Shown here in pieces: positions 4,302 through 41,134 of a stretch of DNA of 64,000 nt. The notes below the pieces were generated by a model. The model searched no databases, was not told where the DNA came from, and saw only the letters and a list, made by a program, of their open reading frames with translations. The first letter of the stretch is position 1. Each line of letters opens with the position of its first letter. The position numbers and the translations under genes were made by a program. This DNA comes from Bacillus subtilis subsp. subtilis str. 168. GTDB lineage: Bacteria > Bacillota > Bacilli > Bacillales > Bacillaceae. The DNA lies in contig NC_000964.3 in assembly GCF_000009045.1 (NCBI RefSeq), positions 3,906,001 through 3,970,000 of the forward strand. The letters are read 5' to 3'.

Positions 4302-5303
4302 TCAGTCAGCAAACGCCTCCTGCAATAAGCGATACGATCGGAGCTTATCTTCAAAATGATGCGTGATGGTCACCACCATGATTTCCTCTGTTTCATACGC
4401 GTTACTCAAAGCTAACAGCCGCTCCTTAACCTGTTCTTTCGTACCAACAATCATTCGATTTCGATTATCAGCAATTCGTCTCTGTTCATAAGGAGAATAC
4501 GTATTTTTCCGAACAGCTTCATACGAAGGAACTCCCTCTAAAGGAATACCCTGCTCTCCCGCCAAAAGTGTAAAATCAAGCACAGCCCCAAGCTCCTCTG
4601 CCTTCTCCTCCGTGTCAGCACAAAGAACAAAAACAGCAACTGCCGCTCGAGGCGTATCTCCTAACACAGACGGTTTGAATCGCCTCTTATACTGTCTGAC
4701 AGTACCCTCTCCGCCCTCTCCATTGATAAAATGGGCAAACATATAGCCAGCGCCAGATTCAGCTGCGAGCAGCGCGCTTTCTCCAGATGAGCCGAGCAGC
4801 CACACATCCGGAGCCGTTGAAATATGCGGCGCAGCGGTCAGATTCGGAAAACGGTGTTTGTCATCCGCCAAATCATGCAAATACATGGTCAGCTCCTTAA
4901 TTTGCTGCGGATACTGATCAGCATTGCGCTTACCACCGTCATTCAGCGCCCATGATGCAATCGGCATTCCCCCCGGTGCTCTGCCAAGCCCCAGGTCAAT
5001 TCTTCCTGGTGTCAGCCCCTCCAGAACACGAAAGTTTTCAGCTACTTTATAAGCACTGTAATGCGGCAGCATGACTCCTCCTGATCCAACACGAATTCGC
5101 TTTGTTTTCGCTGCTATATGACTGATTAGCACCTCAGGACTGGACCCTGCCAGCCGTTTTGAAAAGTGATGCTCAGAAACCCAAAATCTCTTATATCCAA
5201 GGTCCTCAGCAGCTTGGGCAAGCGCAACGGTTTGCTGTAAGGCCGTTTCTGCATTGCTGCCCTCTGATACTGGAGATTGATCTAATATACTTAATGAAAC
5301 CAT
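4302..5303 (-). CDS. ywcH: Luciferase-like flavin-dependent monooxygenase (LLM class)
   Basis: LSILDQSP, WVSEHH, RVGSGGVMLPHY and GRIDLGLGRAPG motifs; start MVSLS at 5303. Confidence 0.9.
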   Translation of the reverse strand: MVSLSILDQSPVSEGSNAETALQQTVALAQAAEDLGYKRFWVSEHHFSKRLAGSSPEVLISHIAAKTKRIRVGSGGVMLPHYSAYKVAENFRVLEGLTPGRIDLGLGRAPGGMPIASWALNDGGKRNADQYPQQIKELTMYLHDLADDKHRFPNLTAAPHISTAPDVWLLGSSGESALLAAESGAGYMFAHFINGEGGEGTVRQYKRRFKPSVLGDTPRAAVAVFVLCADTEEKAEELGAVLDFTLLAGEQGIPLEGVPSYEAVRKNTYSPYEQRRIADNRNRMIVGTKEQVKERLLALSNAYETEEIMVVTITHHFEDKLRSYRLLQEAFAD

Positions 5304-8008: not shown

Positions 8009-8272
8009 ATGATGGACATGTTTTTTGCTTACTTATTGGTTGCCAGCGCAACGCCTCTCTTTATTTGGCTTGATAACAAAAAAGTCGCACTCTCAGCTAT
8101 TCCGCCAATCATTTTAATGTGGGTATTCTTCTTCTTTTACGCAACAGAAAGCCTTTCTCCACTTGGACACACTCTCATGATTATCTTGTTTGCCGTTAAC
8201 GTCATTGTCGCTCATATCGCCGCATTTATCATTTACGGCCTTCCGTATCTTCGCAGAAAGCGAAGCAGCTGA
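8009..8272 (+). CDS. ywcE: Small three-TM membrane protein (spore morphogenesis, holin-like)
   Basis: 87-aa hydrophobic ORF with basic C-terminus; AAAGGAG RBS; extended -10 TGGTATAAT at about 7900-7908. Confidence 0.85.
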
Positions 8273-8279
8273 AGACAGC

Positions 8280-8311
8280 AAAAAACCCTCTTCCACTGAA
8301 GAGGGTTTTTT
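8280..8311. terminator. Bidirectional terminator ywcE/qoxD
   Basis: AAAAAACCCTCTTC-CACT-GAAGAGGGTTTTTT. Confidence 0.9.
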
Positions 8312-8314
8312 GTA

Positions 8315-8689
8315 TTATTCGTTATGGCCTGAATGCTCTGAGTGTTCAGCGCCTCCAGGAGGATTTCCGTCCATATGGTCACCATGGTGATAGTGAGCCG
8401 CGAAAATCCAGATGGATCCAAGTACGATAACGATCGCGCCAAAGAATCCGAACAGCGTGTTTCCGACTTGGATCGTGCCGTTTTCGCTCTCTGTCATATG
8501 CATGAACATGAGAAGCTGCAGCGCCGCCTGAATGAAGGCGAAGCCGAAGATAATCCAAAGTTTTGCTGATGAGCTCAGGTCAGTATACACTGCAACCCAT
8601 AGAGCCAGCAGGGTCAAAACGATAGACAGGATAAAACCTACAATGTGTTTCCATGGAAAGTGACTGTGTTCAGCAGATTTGTTTGCCAT
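8315..8689 (-). CDS. qoxD: Cytochrome aa3-600 quinol oxidase subunit IV
   Basis: Start MANKSAEH at 8689; CyoD-like QLLMFMHM motif. Confidence 0.95.
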   Translation of the reverse strand: MANKSAEHSHFPWKHIVGFILSIVLTLLALWVAVYTDLSSSAKLWIIFGFAFIQAALQLLMFMHMTESENGTIQVGNTLFGFFGAIVIVLGSIWIFAAHYHHGDHMDGNPPGGAEHSEHSGHNE

Positions 8690-8690
8690 T

Positions 8691-9305
8691 TTACAGACCC
8701 CCCAATCCCATGAGATAGACACCTGTAAAGATGAAAATCCATACAACATCTAAGAAGTGCCAGTACAAGCTTGAGATAAAGATTTTAGATGAAGTTTGCG
8801 GAGTTAAGCCGCGTTTCTTCAACTGAATCAGAATTCCTGTGATCCAGAAAATCCCGATTGTTACGTGAGTTCCGTGAGTTCCAAGTAAAACAAAGAATCC
8901 AGACCAGAACGCACTTGTACTGAGAGCCGCTCCTTCATGTACATAGTGAACAAACTCGTTGATCTCGCATCCGACGAAGCCGGCACCGAGAAGAAGAGTG
9001 ATAATTGTCCAAATGACTACGCCTTTTAAACTTCCGCGGCGCATTTCATGAACAGCGATCCCGCAGGTAAAGCTGCTGATCAGCAGCAAGAACGTCATAA
9101 TCATTACCAGATTGACTTCAAATAGTTCGTCTGGCAAGACACCTCCAGCTGTTCTGTTTTTAAGAACGAAGAAGGTTGCAAATAGTGTTGAGAACAACAC
9201 AATTTCTGCCCCTAAAAAGATCCAAAACCCGAGAATATTAAGTCTGCCGGTTTCAGATTGATATTCCATAGGCGCGTTAGAATTGCCGTGTTCTGCATGT
9301 TCCAT
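8691..9305 (-). CDS. qoxC: Quinol oxidase subunit III
   Basis: GFWIFLGAE, GTHGTHV and LYWHFLDVVW motifs. Confidence 0.96.
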   Translation of the reverse strand: MEHAEHGNSNAPMEYQSETGRLNILGFWIFLGAEIVLFSTLFATFFVLKNRTAGGVLPDELFEVNLVMIMTFLLLISSFTCGIAVHEMRRGSLKGVVIWTIITLLLGAGFVGCEINEFVHYVHEGAALSTSAFWSGFFVLLGTHGTHVTIGIFWITGILIQLKKRGLTPQTSSKIFISSLYWHFLDVVWIFIFTGVYLMGLGGL

Positions 9306-18228: not shown

Positions 18229-19766
18229 ATATGACTGCTTTTTTATTATTTTTGGCGATTGTTGGCCTGACGCTTATTATCACGTATTTTGCCGCGAAGC
18301 GGACGAAAACGACGAGTGAGTTTTATACGGCGGGCGGCGGGCTCACCGGCGTTCAGAATGGACTGGCAATTGCCGGTGACTACATGTCTGCCGCCTCGTT
18401 TCTCGGGATTGCCGGAATGATTGCGTTATATGGATTTGATGGCTTCTTTTACAGCATCGGTTTTCTGGTGGCTTATCTCGTTGTCTTGTACATCGTGGCG
18501 GAGCCGCTTCGGAATCTTGGAAAGTACACGATGGCAGACATGATTGCCGCTCGCTTTAAAGAAAAGAAAATCCGCGGTGTCGCGGCTCTCAATACCATTG
18601 CCATCTCTACTTTTTATATGATCGCCCAGCTCGTGGGGGCGGGCGCGCTGATCAAACTGCTTCTAGGGCTGGATTATACCGCGGCTGTCCTCATCGTCGG
18701 AGTGCTGATGACCATTTATGTCGTGTTTGGCGGCATGATCGCGACAAGCTGGGTTCAAATTATTAAAGCTGTTTTGCTGATGGCCGGCACACTCGTGATT
18801 TCGATTATCGTGTTTTCGAAATTCGGCTTTAGCCTTAATACCATGTTTGAACAGATGAAAACGGCTACTCCGCTTGGCGCTGATTTTTTGAACCCCGGAA
18901 ATAAATACAAGGTGCCGCTTGAGACCTTGTCGTTAAACTTGGCACTCGTGCTGGGAACCGCCGGGCTTCCGCATATATTGATCCGGTTTTATACCGTTAA
19001 GGATGCCAAGACGGCCCGTACATCCGTTGTGTCAGCGACATGGATTATCGGTGTGTTTTACATTATGACGGTATTTCTCGGCTTTGGTGCCGCGGCATTT
19101 GTCGGTTTTGACGCGATTACGGCGGCTGATCAAGCGGGAAATATGGCGGCTCCGCTTTTAGCAAAAGCGCTCGGAGGAGACTTTCTGTTCGCGTTTGTAT
19201 CAGCCATCGCCTTTGCCACCATTTTGGCTGTCGTGACAGGGTTGGTGCTGTCTGCCGCCTCAGCATTTGCCCATGATATTTACAGCCAGATCATCAGAAA
19301 GGGAGAAGCAACTGAAAAAGAACAAATGAAAGCGGCCAGATGGGCTTCTGTCGCCGTGTCAGTGCTCTCGATTCTCCTTGCGATTTTTGCACAATCCTTA
19401 AATGTGGCGTTCCTTGTTGCACTCGCGTTTGCGGTAGCCGCCAGCGCAAACCTTCCGCTGATTGTGTTTACAGTCTTCTGGAAACGATTCAATGCCTCAG
19501 GCGCTTTATGGGGCAGCCTGACAGGCCTGATCAGCGCGCTTGTGCTGGTATCGATGAGCCCTAGTGTGTGGGACCCGGCCGGAGGTGCTATTTTTACCGG
19601 TGATCCGCTCATTCCGCTATCTAATCCAGGAATTATTTCCATCCCGCTCGGCTTTCTCGGCGCGTGGCTCGGAACGGTGCTGTCGTCTGATAAAACAATT
19701 GATGAAGATACGTTTGCAGAAATTCAGGTGAAGGCGCATACTGGCGTCCATATGGAACAGGAATAA
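18225..19766 (+). CDS. ywcA: Sodium:solute symporter (ActP-like, acetate/monocarboxylate)
   Basis: NGLAIAGDYMSAASFLG and GTAGLPHIL motifs. Confidence 0.9.
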   Translation: MNMTAFLLFLAIVGLTLIITYFAAKRTKTTSEFYTAGGGLTGVQNGLAIAGDYMSAASFLGIAGMIALYGFDGFFYSIGFLVAYLVVLYIVAEPLRNLGKYTMADMIAARFKEKKIRGVAALNTIAISTFYMIAQLVGAGALIKLLLGLDYTAAVLIVGVLMTIYVVFGGMIATSWVQIIKAVLLMAGTLVISIIVFSKFGFSLNTMFEQMKTATPLGADFLNPGNKYKVPLETLSLNLALVLGTAGLPHILIRFYTVKDAKTARTSVVSATWIIGVFYIMTVFLGFGAAAFVGFDAITAADQAGNMAAPLLAKALGGDFLFAFVSAIAFATILAVVTGLVLSAASAFAHDIYSQIIRKGEATEKEQMKAARWASVAVSVLSILLAIFAQSLNVAFLVALAFAVAASANLPLIVFTVFWKRFNASGALWGSLTGLISALVLVSMSPSVWDPAGGAIFTGDPLIPLSNPGIISIPLGFLGAWLGTVLSSDKTIDEDTFAEIQVKAHTGVHMEQE

Positions 19767-19794
19767 AAAAAGCTCTCTTTATCGAGAGCTTTTT
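19765..19794. terminator. Bidirectional terminator ywcA/ywbO
   Basis: AAAAAAGCTCTC-TTTATC-GAGAGCTTTTT. Confidence 0.85.
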
Positions 19795-19796
19795 CC

Positions 19797-20399
19797 TTAC
19801 TTTTTCTTCTGCTCGTCAGAAATCGCTTTTTCAAATACATCCTTGCCGGCAGCACCCGGAATTACAGTGTCACCGATAATAAAGGTTGGAACGGCTGTGA
19901 TGTCAGCCTCTTCATAGGCGTGCTTCAAGGCTTGGCGCTGCACGTCCTGATATGTTCTTGTTTCCAGTGCTGATTTGAATGATGCACCGTCTAATCCCAC
20001 TTCCTCGGCGAGCTTCGTCAAGATGTCAATATCGCCGATATTTTGGTCCTCCTGGAAAAATGCCTGAAAGACACGGGTGTTGTATTCATGTCCTTTATTG
20101 TATTCCTTCGCAAAATGGAAGCCTTCAAACGCGAGGTCTGTATACGGATGGGGCGAGACGTTTGGAAAATTGATCTCGACTCCTAATTTCTCCGCCATTG
20201 GCTGAATTGATGTCTGCCACATGTACTGTTTAGAAGGATCATTGACCGGATCAAGCTGAGGAGATGGGCTTGGGCGCAGTTCAAACGGCATCCACTCGAC
20301 TTCAACATCCTTTCCTTTTATCGCTTCTTCAAAAGCGGCTTTTCCAACAAAACAAAATGGGCAGACGTAATCTGAATAAACTTTAATGTGTACTGTCAT
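19797..20399 (-). CDS. ywbO: DsbA/FrnE-like thioredoxin-fold protein
   Basis: SDYVCPFC CxxC motif; ITAVPTF cis-Pro loop. Confidence 0.9.
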   Translation of the reverse strand: MTVHIKVYSDYVCPFCFVGKAAFEEAIKGKDVEVEWMPFELRPSPSPQLDPVNDPSKQYMWQTSIQPMAEKLGVEINFPNVSPHPYTDLAFEGFHFAKEYNKGHEYNTRVFQAFFQEDQNIGDIDILTKLAEEVGLDGASFKSALETRTYQDVQRQALKHAYEEADITAVPTFIIGDTVIPGAAGKDVFEKAISDEQKKK

Positions 20400-20465
20400 G
20401 ATAATCTCCTTTCATACTAAATTGATTTTAAACTGTAACAATTAAAGTTACAACTGTTTTTTAAT

Positions 20466-20681
20466 AAAGAAGCCGATTTAGGCTTCTTTCAGATTGATGA
20501 CAAAATCCTAAAAAGTTTTAGGATTTTGTCATCCTTTCAGCGTGATTGAAAACCCTTGAAGTCTAGGAAAGCCGAGCATTGGAGCGGAGCGAATGCTCTA
20601 ATTCGTGAGCACCAACGCACAGGCTTGACAACGAATGCGAGGGTTTGTCGACACGCTGAAAGAAGCCTGTAAAGGCTTCTT

Positions 20682-20682
<1 letters not shown>
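20466..20682. repeat. About 190-bp palindromic intergenic element (MITE/REP-like) flanked by duplicated hairpins
   Basis: 13-bp terminal inverted repeat 20480-20492/20656-20668; 18-bp perfect hairpin 20496-20533; inner inverted repeat 20534-20544/20652-20662. Confidence 0.8.
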
Positions 20683-21950
<1,268 letters not shown>

Positions 21951-40393: not shown

Positions 40394-40909
40394 ATGGAAC
40401 GTTCACATCAACATCAGCAGCTTCGGAAGGAAGAACACGATACACTTTCTAAGCTCAAACAAATGCCCGTCGAGTCACTCAACCTGGAAGCCATTTCGAT
40501 CGCTACGAATCTGTATCGGTCTGCACAAAGGCTCCGTGTCAAAATGGAGACTGAGGTTCTTTCTACCTATAACCTTTCTTGGACCGCTTTCTCCATTCTT
40601 TATGATCTATGGGTATGGGGAGCGCTCGAAACGAGAAAAATCGCTGAGCTGTCAGGGATATCTACAGCTACAGCAAGCAACGTGATCAAAACGCTCGAAA
40701 AAAAGAGTTTTTGCCGTAAAAGCATCGACACAAGAGATCGGCGACTCGTGTTTGTCTCAATCACCGATTCCGGCAAACAAGCGATCGAAGAACTCTACCC
40801 GGAGTTTCACAAAGGGGAAACAGAGCTCATTGCGGGAATGACGAAGGACGAACAGAAAATATTGACAGGGCTGCTTAGAAAGGTAGCTGACAATCTTCAT
40901 ACAACATAA
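40394..40909 (+). CDS. ywaE: MarR-family regulator of tyrZ (DtrR)
   Basis: Winged HTH IAELSGISTATASNVIKTLEKK...DRR. Confidence 0.9.
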   Translation: MERSHQHQQLRKEEHDTLSKLKQMPVESLNLEAISIATNLYRSAQRLRVKMETEVLSTYNLSWTAFSILYDLWVWGALETRKIAELSGISTATASNVIKTLEKKSFCRKSIDTRDRRLVFVSITDSGKQAIEELYPEFHKGETELIAGMTKDEQKILTGLLRKVADNLHTT

Positions 40910-41134
40910 GCTTTGACGGGAATCCAGTAGCGGTTTGTCTCCCTGTTTCAGAGAGCCGGCGGTAGGTGCGAGCCGGCGCACAGGCAAACGTGAATTACCT
41001 CCCCAAGCTTTCTTTGTGAACCTTAGTAGCAAAGAACGGGAAACCGTTATTCGAATGAGCGGAAGACAATGTCTTCAACCAGGGTGGTACCGCGTGCATT
41101 GAGCCACGTCCCTTATTGGGATGGGCTCTTTTTT
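40910..41134 (+). ncRNA. Tyrosine T-box riboswitch
   Basis: AGTAG, AGAGA and GGTGCGA stem I motifs; specifier TAC at 40996-40998; T-box AACCAGGGTGGTACCGCG at 41077-41094; terminator at 41101-41134. Confidence 0.93.

Follow-up and report, generated by a model that had tools for sequence, protein, structure and literature searches.

A gene-less mobile element of Bacillus that duplicates intrinsic-terminator hairpins and most likely descends from IS1182-family insertion sequences

The window analysed here, a stretch of 64 000 nucleotides of the Bacillus subtilis chromosome, carries efeB and a ywbO-like gene, both on the minus strand and separated by a spacer of 282 bp; the spacer has the same length in another B. 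subtilis strain. It contains a 169-bp element flanked on both sides by a hairpin (table 1). A profile hidden Markov model (HMM) built from 39 members of the family described below matches this element from end to end (E = 7e-51), and comparisons of filled and empty alleles give the same boundaries. According to both BLAST and the profile HMM, the window contains one copy. The family has no conserved open reading frame (ORF), and only chance ORFs cross the window copy, for which the first-pass annotation of this sequence had noted none. There is no match to the element in Rfam 15 at the gathering score, and extending the search up to E = 10 yields only hairpin-driven chance matches. The sole Rfam match in the window is a T-box leader at positions 40904-41116 of the plus strand (140.8 bits, where the gathering score is 93).

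Table 1. Features of the element and of its surroundings in the window.
Feature	Position	Strand	Remarks
Element proper	20490-20658	+	169 bp, 5'-CAGATTGATGACAAA ... TTTGTCGACACGCTG-3'; from profile HMM and filled/empty comparisons
Left target-duplicate	20466-20489	.	efeB terminator hairpin AAAGAAGCC-GATTTA-GGCTTCTTT; on the minus strand followed by TTTATTAAAAAA
Right target-duplicate	20659-20682	.	efeB terminator hairpin AAAGAAGCC-TGTAAA-GGCTTCTTT; adjoins the efeB stop codon (20682-20684)
Left terminal inverted repeat	20490-20504	+	CAGATTGATGACAAA; like IS1182-family left ends (GAGGYTGGGACAAAACCC)
Right terminal inverted repeat	20644-20658	+	TTTGTCGACACGCTG
Internal hairpin	20496-20513 / 20516-20533	+	perfect, 18 bp; followed by a T-rich run
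Conserved core	20538-20658	+	one long irregular hairpin, closed by CAGCGTG / CACGCTG
Core helices			AAACCYU/AGGGUUU, ARGNC/GNCYU, GYAYYGG/CCRRCRC, CGAAU/AUUCG
efeB	20682-21932	-	Dyp-type deferrochelatase/peroxidase (TIGR01412, 624 bits); gene whose terminator was struck
ywbO-like gene	19797-20399	-	DsbA-family oxidoreductase; downstream neighbour of the element
Unoccupied target terminator hairpin	8280-8308	-	AAACCCTCTTCAGTGGAAGAGGGTTTTTT; between convergent ORFs 8009-8272 (+) and 8315-8749 (-)

The two hairpins that flank the window copy have a 9-bp stem in common. The loops have diverged, and the window copy is therefore old. Because the element lies antisense to efeB, it splits the efeB terminator into a proximal hairpin without a T-run and a distal hairpin that has one. 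All the inverted repeats listed in the first-pass annotation were found where it had placed them, namely a 13-bp pair (AGGCTTCTTTCAG / CTGAAAGAAGCCT), which is enclosed in an outer imperfect inverted repeat of 39 nt (20466-20504 / 20644-20682), and the pairs CTTTCAGCGTG / CACGCTGAAAG, AAACCCT / AGGGTTT and GAGCATT / AATGCTC. The 13-bp pair had been taken as the terminal inverted repeat of a 189-bp element (20480-20668), and this delimitation is wrong: the pair is a composite of the duplicated host hairpin stem and the terminal CAG / CTG of the element, so that the element extends from 20490 to 20658. The GAGCATT / AATGCTC stem is present in the window copy but is not conserved in the family, where this region keeps instead the pairing of G(C/U)A(Y)(Y)GG to CC(R)(R)C(R)C, together with a CGAAU-loop-AUUCG hairpin.

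Two other features of this region were observed. A bidirectional terminator-like hairpin (AAAAAGCTCTCT...AGAGAGCTTTTT, 19765-19796) lies between the ywbO-like gene and a convergent gene resembling those of cation/acetate symporters; it is of the type of site used by the element and is empty in the window. Upstream of ywbO, an inverted repeat TTGTAAC-N-GTTACA accompanied by a promoter-like site (window 20425-20453, minus strand; L127:2945-2990) is kept in B. subtilis and B. amyloliquefaciens, is unaffected by the insertion and may be a ywbO operator.

The distribution of the element was established by searching one genome per species for a pattern made up of two blocks that do not vary in the core (AGTCTAGGAA-N28-40-CGTGAGCACC). 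There are at least 120 matching stretches, in agreement with the earlier proposal of a non-autonomous multi-copy element. Among the matches listed, all but one contig of 352 bp belong to the B. subtilis, B. licheniformis and B. pumilus clades; some individual genomes of the pumilus clade carry 15 loci or more, and none of the matches listed comes from the B. amyloliquefaciens/velezensis group. A blastn search of a plasmid collection gave four matching records that look like mis-assigned Bacillus contigs; in their alignment only a core of about 127 nt is conserved, and the adjoining hairpins vary by locus. Bacillus-type copies were seen in records labelled as plasmids of Klebsiella variicola (L001, CP063894.1) and Stutzerimonas stutzeri (L003 and L004, NZ_CP078512.1 and NZ_CP078511.1), and in the 352-bp contig, assigned to Rhodobium orientis (L120, NZ_NPEV01000131.1). 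The flanks of L001 are 93-97% identical to those of Bacillus sp. N13C7 (L052). All of these sequences are probably contaminants or mis-assigned.

Members of the family are 169-181 bp long, with a consensus of about 175 bp, and have the form 5'-CAGATTGTTGACAAA ... TTTGTCTACACGCTG-3'. The two termini constitute an imperfect inverted repeat with 12 matches in 15 positions, which is kept in the 39 representatives. The left end adjoins a hairpin of 16-18 bp, followed by a T-rich run, and the remainder forms an irregular hairpin of about 120 nt, the core, with roughly 72-98% pairwise identity over the three Bacillus clades.

Several derivatives of this form exist. Short forms lack the left 45 nt, the T-run of the host hairpin being fused to the T-run that follows the internal hairpin; at least one of them (L119) arose by deletion in situ, since the orthologous locus of another species (L012) carries the long form. 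In L014 (minus strand, oriented position 4479) there is a solo left module composed of the host hairpin, CAGATTGTTGACAAAGGGC..., the internal hairpin and the T-run, without the core, apparently derived by deletion. At L008:1-480, L021:6350-6700 and L113:2100-2450 there are complete or partial tandems with a common middle hairpin, in the order hairpin-element-hairpin-element-hairpin. They could have arisen when a hairpin that was already duplicated received another insertion, or through unequal exchange involving the hairpin repeats.

The sequences adjoining the element were analysed in 110 copies for which both flanks were present. In 75 of them a direct repeat of 16-34 bp (median 25; 41 perfect) abuts both ends of the element, and perfect duplications are found in all three clades. 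The repeat is in each case a locus-specific hairpin with its loop, in direct orientation, with an A-run before it and a T-run after it, that is, the palindrome of an intrinsic terminator; no target sequence is common to the loci. In 54 of 74 cases the ends of the duplication are symmetric around the dyad to within 1 nt, and A·T pairing could lengthen the stem by 1-8 bp past the repeat.

Comparison of 400-bp flanks among all fetched loci revealed more than 10 filled/empty pairs between related genomes, and every empty site has exactly one hairpin. The cleanest pair is L111 (B. zhangzhouensis) and L027, with flanks 93-98% identical; others are L001 and L052, L060/L075 and L054, and L027 and L056. 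The window itself provides an empty allele at 8183-8392, where the corresponding locus of B. inaquosorum (L123) is filled and has its hairpin duplicated. At the efeB-ywbO locus, where a search for an empty site had been recommended, B. amyloliquefaciens has the empty allele: its spacer measures 86 bp, against 282 bp in the window, and contains one terminator hairpin. Such pairs, with a single hairpin in the empty allele, prove that the element inserts at terminators and that the hairpin is duplicated, as the first-pass annotation had supposed from the window copy. The element is thus mobile and non-autonomous; it targets terminator palindromes of any sequence, and the whole palindrome is duplicated symmetrically. 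[quoted passage not shown] Its target duplication, which comprises a whole hairpin and is variable in length, is atypical for a MITE.

With long ORFs taken as gene calls, the copies always adjoin the 3' end of a gene. There are 25 copies between convergent genes, 22 in the (-,-) arrangement seen in the window, antisense to the terminated gene, nine in the (+,+) arrangement, co-oriented with the terminated gene, and none between divergent genes. For 90 of 125 copies the plus strand of the element coincides with the negative-GC-skew strand (p about 1e-6), indicating that its orientation is non-random relative to replication or transcription.

The stretch 20466-20682 is predicted to fold with an energy of -105 kcal/mol on the plus strand (z = -11.8) and -93.9 kcal/mol on the minus strand (z = -11.0), values equalled by none of 200 shuffled sequences in either case. 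Covariation was analysed in 39 representatives less than 93% identical to each other. In a structure of 52 pairs, 95.1% of the cells are paired and 16 pairs have changed on both sides; none of 500 shuffles reaches the observed values, and all measures collapse when the partners are slid by one to three columns. The internal hairpin (helix 1) has 97.9% of its cells paired and five pairs changed on both sides, its stem being AAATCC/GGATTT in the subtilis clade and AAGGGC/GCCCTT in the pumilus clade. The conserved secondary structure suspected from the window copy is therefore borne out. A single copy genome-wide, no empty alleles and no covariation were the findings that the first-pass annotation had named as fatal to its proposal, and each is contradicted by the data.

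The fold also shows an asymmetry between strands. There are 144 G·T against 24 A·C pairs, or 68 against 24 when only minority states are considered (counts uncorrected for shared ancestry), and two G·U pairs are nearly invariant. This excess favours folding of the plus strand rather than duplex symmetry. A mutational bias was considered as its source and rejected, as the bias expected on the plus strand, which is mostly the lagging strand, runs the opposite way. The conserved, covarying fold, read on the plus strand, suggests that the single strand of the element, as RNA or DNA, is also under selection.

IS1182-like elements of Ureibacillus, Kurthia and Staphylococcus have inverted repeats that can be aligned with the ends of the element. 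The set used for comparison comprised IS1272, as present in a plasmid record, together with IS1182-like copies of Kurthia, Paenibacillus, Ureibacillus, Niallia and Heyndrickxia. The best alignment has z = 5.1 (0 of 3000 shuffles), and the right ends of the element give z = 3.4-3.8. Most of the IS1182-like inverted repeats read GAG(G/T)(C/T)TGGGACA(A/T)AAC..., and that of the Paenibacillus copy differs (ACGGGGCTGTCCCAAAAGT). The layout of the left end, inverted repeat, hairpin and T-run, is the same in the IS1182-like elements and in the element described here. This likeness of short ends is suggestive of a relationship with the family. No homology of the core to the interiors of these insertion sequences could be retained, the nhmmer matches (E = 0.66 and 4.9) being too weak; they lie inside the left end of the Paenibacillus copy (L133) and about 70 nt past the right inverted repeat of the Niallia copy (L142). 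In the Kurthia (L134:330-520) and Paenibacillus (L133:360-530) copies, an imperfect palindrome of about 170-200 nt follows the left-end hairpin and recalls the core of the element by its position and layout, with no significant similarity in sequence (nhmmer E = 0.66); it is absent from the Ureibacillus, Niallia and Heyndrickxia copies.

Members of the IS1182 family target terminator hairpins by shape, without a sequence consensus (PMC4923244, PMC5678879). The insertion of IS1272 is structure-dependent and takes place at terminator hairpins, with deletion of the stem-loop and no duplication (PMC4923244). No hairpin duplication was found around the IS1182-like copies inspected here. Those of Ureibacillus and Heyndrickxia have an A-run on one side, a T-run on the other and no remaining hairpin, which is the outcome expected of stem-loop replacement. 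The element therefore behaves unlike its studied relatives.

IS1182-like elements, including ISBpu1, have been reported in B. pumilus (PMC7820076). ISBpu1 is 1709 bp long, with terminal inverted repeats matching at 14 of 15 positions (ISfinder values in PMC10780176, table S1). The same table lists six short BLASTN matches to ISBpu1 in each of two B. subtilis isolates (60-121 bits, 83-97% identity) and no match in one B. velezensis isolate. This distribution agrees with that found here for the element, and the short matches are probably copies of it and not transposase genes, although the authors of PMC10780176 did not interpret them so. ISBpu1 may accordingly be regarded as a candidate parent of the element, a link suggested by the similarity of the short ends and by this published table.

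A source of transposase was sought in several ways. In about 1 Mb of fetched Bacillus loci, no copy had a transposase nearby, and no larger element sharing these ends was present. All loci were also searched for left or right ends without the core, for repeats of more than 600 bp common to loci and, by tblastn, for the IS1272 transposase, with no result. Neither blastn of both element types against PLSDB plasmids and phage records nor a search of viral contigs for the exact left end revealed an autonomous parent or a longer element, respectively, and tblastn of two IS1182 transposases against plasmids gave no copy from the B. subtilis group. B. subtilis 168-type genomes are not known to carry IS1182 transposases, and the copies in them would then be relics. 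The source record of ISBpu1 is NC_009848 (B. pumilus SAFR-032).

These data make IS1182-family insertion sequences the most likely ancestors of the element, and the best explanation as a whole is that of a gene-less, terminator-targeting MITE moved in trans by a DDE transposase of this family, to which we assign a probability of about 0.7. The transposase, for which ISBpu1 is the obvious candidate, would cut and join the element, and would recognize a hairpin or cruciform by its shape and not by its sequence; we put the probability of this mobilization in trans at about two in three. The whole stem-loop would then be duplicated, with about even odds, by strand transfer at the 5' feet of an extruded cruciform or of a hairpin at the replication fork. 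Such a reaction corresponds to 'pathway b' of the published model for IS1272, an alternative outcome drawn there only as hypothetical and unobserved. Neither the orientation bias (90 of 125) nor the strand-specific excess of G·T pairs is expected from a DDE reaction on a symmetric cruciform, or from a symmetric double-strand reaction in general; both may reflect a role for a single strand, RNA or DNA.

The same observations may be read in terms of a structured RNA family, in which the element would be a small RNA or a 3'-UTR module and mobility would merely spread an RNA gene. The plus-strand transcript would start from a promoter in the left arm (TTGACA, spacing of 16-18 nt, weak -10) or come from read-through, and would end at the right-hand hairpin. 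The covariation, with compensatory changes in 16 pairs, favours this reading, and the G·T excess and the nearly invariant G·U pairs point to a fold of the plus strand and not of a duplex. The right hairpin copy retains its T-run in the plus orientation, and the left arm has a promoter-like site (ATGACA-16-TAGGAT, 9/12), with a perfect TTGACA in most family members. The bcr1 repeat of the Bacillus cereus group, a transcribed mobile repeat with compensatory changes (PMC3184786), provides a precedent. Against this stand the poor -10 elements, promoter-like sites no more frequent than in shuffled sequences (three found, 1.9 expected) and the lack of any Rfam match, even at E = 10. The copy number and insertion polymorphism resemble those of a parasite, covariation in a palindrome could partly reflect the fitting of both ends to one transposase, and the duplication of the hairpin is left unaccounted for. 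As an explanation of the element we consider a structured RNA unlikely; it would be compatible with trans mobilization by an IS1182-family transposase as a second layer.

A more specific role for the core seems rather improbable. The core would be an RNA or single-stranded DNA structure that aids the transposition of the element itself, or else a 3'-end module recruited by the host, and the duplication of whole terminators would represent 'pathway b'. It could, for example, serve to bring the transposase to extruded terminator hairpins or to set it in place there; the non-coding RNAs of IS110 and IS605 relatives offer an analogy.

It is also conceivable, but very unlikely, that no dedicated enzyme is involved, and that polymerase template switching or target-primed copying of RNA at hairpin-stalled forks, guided by microhomology in the A-run and T-run, copied the hairpin twice. 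Both junctions always lie inside the A-run and the T-run, the duplication is variable in length and set by the hairpin, the 5'-shortened forms join at T-run microhomology, and orientation is biased relative to replication, as such a process would have it. The ends of the element are precise (CAG ... CTG), though, and form an inverted repeat related to those of insertion sequences, at least one short form is a deletion in situ (L119, by comparison with L012), and accidents of replication could hardly yield, in one genome, dozens of insertions that are independent, clean and full-length. LINE-like target-primed reverse transcription, suggested by the variable duplications and the 5'-short forms, was set aside as a leading explanation on the same two grounds, the in situ origin of the L119 short form and the IS-like inverted repeat, and because an RNA copy would bring the hairpin of the donor and not that of the target.

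The weakest candidate is a single-stranded DNA transposon remnant, either a PATE of the IS200/IS605 type or a REPIN, moved by an HUH/Y1 transposase or a RAYT acting on hairpins at the replication fork, as the first-pass annotation had proposed. Conserved subterminal hairpins, hairpin targets, a strand-specific structure and the orientation bias relative to GC skew are all in its favour. IS200/IS605 elements and REPINs do not duplicate their target and insert 3' of a fixed target of 4-5 nt; here the duplications are 16-34 bp long, no target sequence is common to the insertions, and the terminal inverted repeats resemble those of a DDE family, IS1182. The plus strand has negative skew, where use of the lagging-strand template would favour the other strand, and neither a tnpA nor a RAYT gene was seen in the fetched loci (loci without systematic annotation). 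Nor does the element consist of paired short REP units as a REPIN does, being one unit of 175 bp that duplicates a long target, and the long duplications without a fixed target are foreign to IS200/IS605-type PATEs; this origin is not supported.

A full-text literature search found no published account of this element as a terminator-duplicating MITE of IS1182 lineage, and no comparative proof of its behaviour; the targeting of hairpins by IS1182 members and the long direct repeats of ISBpu1 (ISfinder) were already known. The element presumably corresponds to a repeat of about 190 bp, with about ten copies in B. subtilis 168, that has been regarded as unexplained since the genome paper of 1997. 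A repeat of the best-studied Gram-positive genome is given here a concrete identity that can be put to the test. A number of about ten copies fits with the six short ISBpu1 matches per B. subtilis isolate (PMC10780176, table S1), and ISfinder-based 'ISBpu1' calls in B. subtilis genomes should probably be read as copies of the element rather than as transposase genes.

The family also illustrates, in dozens of natural before-and-after pairs, a mode of transposition in which an entire intrinsic terminator is copied. Each copy alters the architecture of a 3' end, leaving a proximal hairpin without a U-run, so that the transcript can extend by about 200 nt to reach the distal one. This should be allowed for when terminators are predicted and 3' UTRs are mapped in the host species. 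If the core did have the function in transposition or at 3' ends considered above, the natural duplication of whole terminators would show 'pathway b' of structure-dependent transposition, predicted and so far unobserved.

Among known systems, the element is closest to the IS1182 family (IS1272, ISBpu1, ISBspe1), with which it shares structure-dependent targeting of terminators and palindromes (PMC4923244, PMC5678879), a terminal sequence of the type nAGnnTGn(n)GACAAAAyCC and a left end composed of inverted repeat, hairpin and T-run. The direct repeats listed for ISBpu1 (30 bp) and ISBspe1 (23 bp) fall within the range of its duplications (ISfinder values in PMC10780176, table S1); IS1272 (PMC4923244) and the Ureibacillus copies have no such repeat. 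It differs from the family in having no transposase gene, in its size of about 175 bp instead of 1.5-2 kb and in its additional covarying core of about 120 nt, and from IS1272 and the IS1182-like copies inspected here in that it duplicates the whole stem-loop, which IS1272 removes. The bcr1 and Group A repeats of the B. cereus group are likewise multi-copy, non-autonomous and intergenic; bcr1 is of similar size (about 155 bp), varies between close strains and keeps an RNA-type fold through compensatory changes (PMC3184786). In contrast to the element, with its duplicated hairpins of 16-34 bp, bcr1 is flanked by direct repeats of 5 bp, belongs to another host clade and has another sequence, and terminator targeting is not among the properties given for it in that account (PMC3184786).

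Other systems offer more distant parallels, among them the integration machinery of CRISPR arrays. The element has no Cas1, array or leader, and any terminator hairpin may serve as its target; the resemblance is an analogy of mechanism only. In spacer integration by Cas1-Cas2, staggered attacks flank a palindromic repeat, which is duplicated in full when the gaps are repaired. Class C group II introns, IS1397 and IS110 relatives find safe places for insertion in terminator or REP hairpins, with no duplication or one of 3-4 bp, and carry ribozyme or transposase genes; the element, which uses the same kind of site, has neither.
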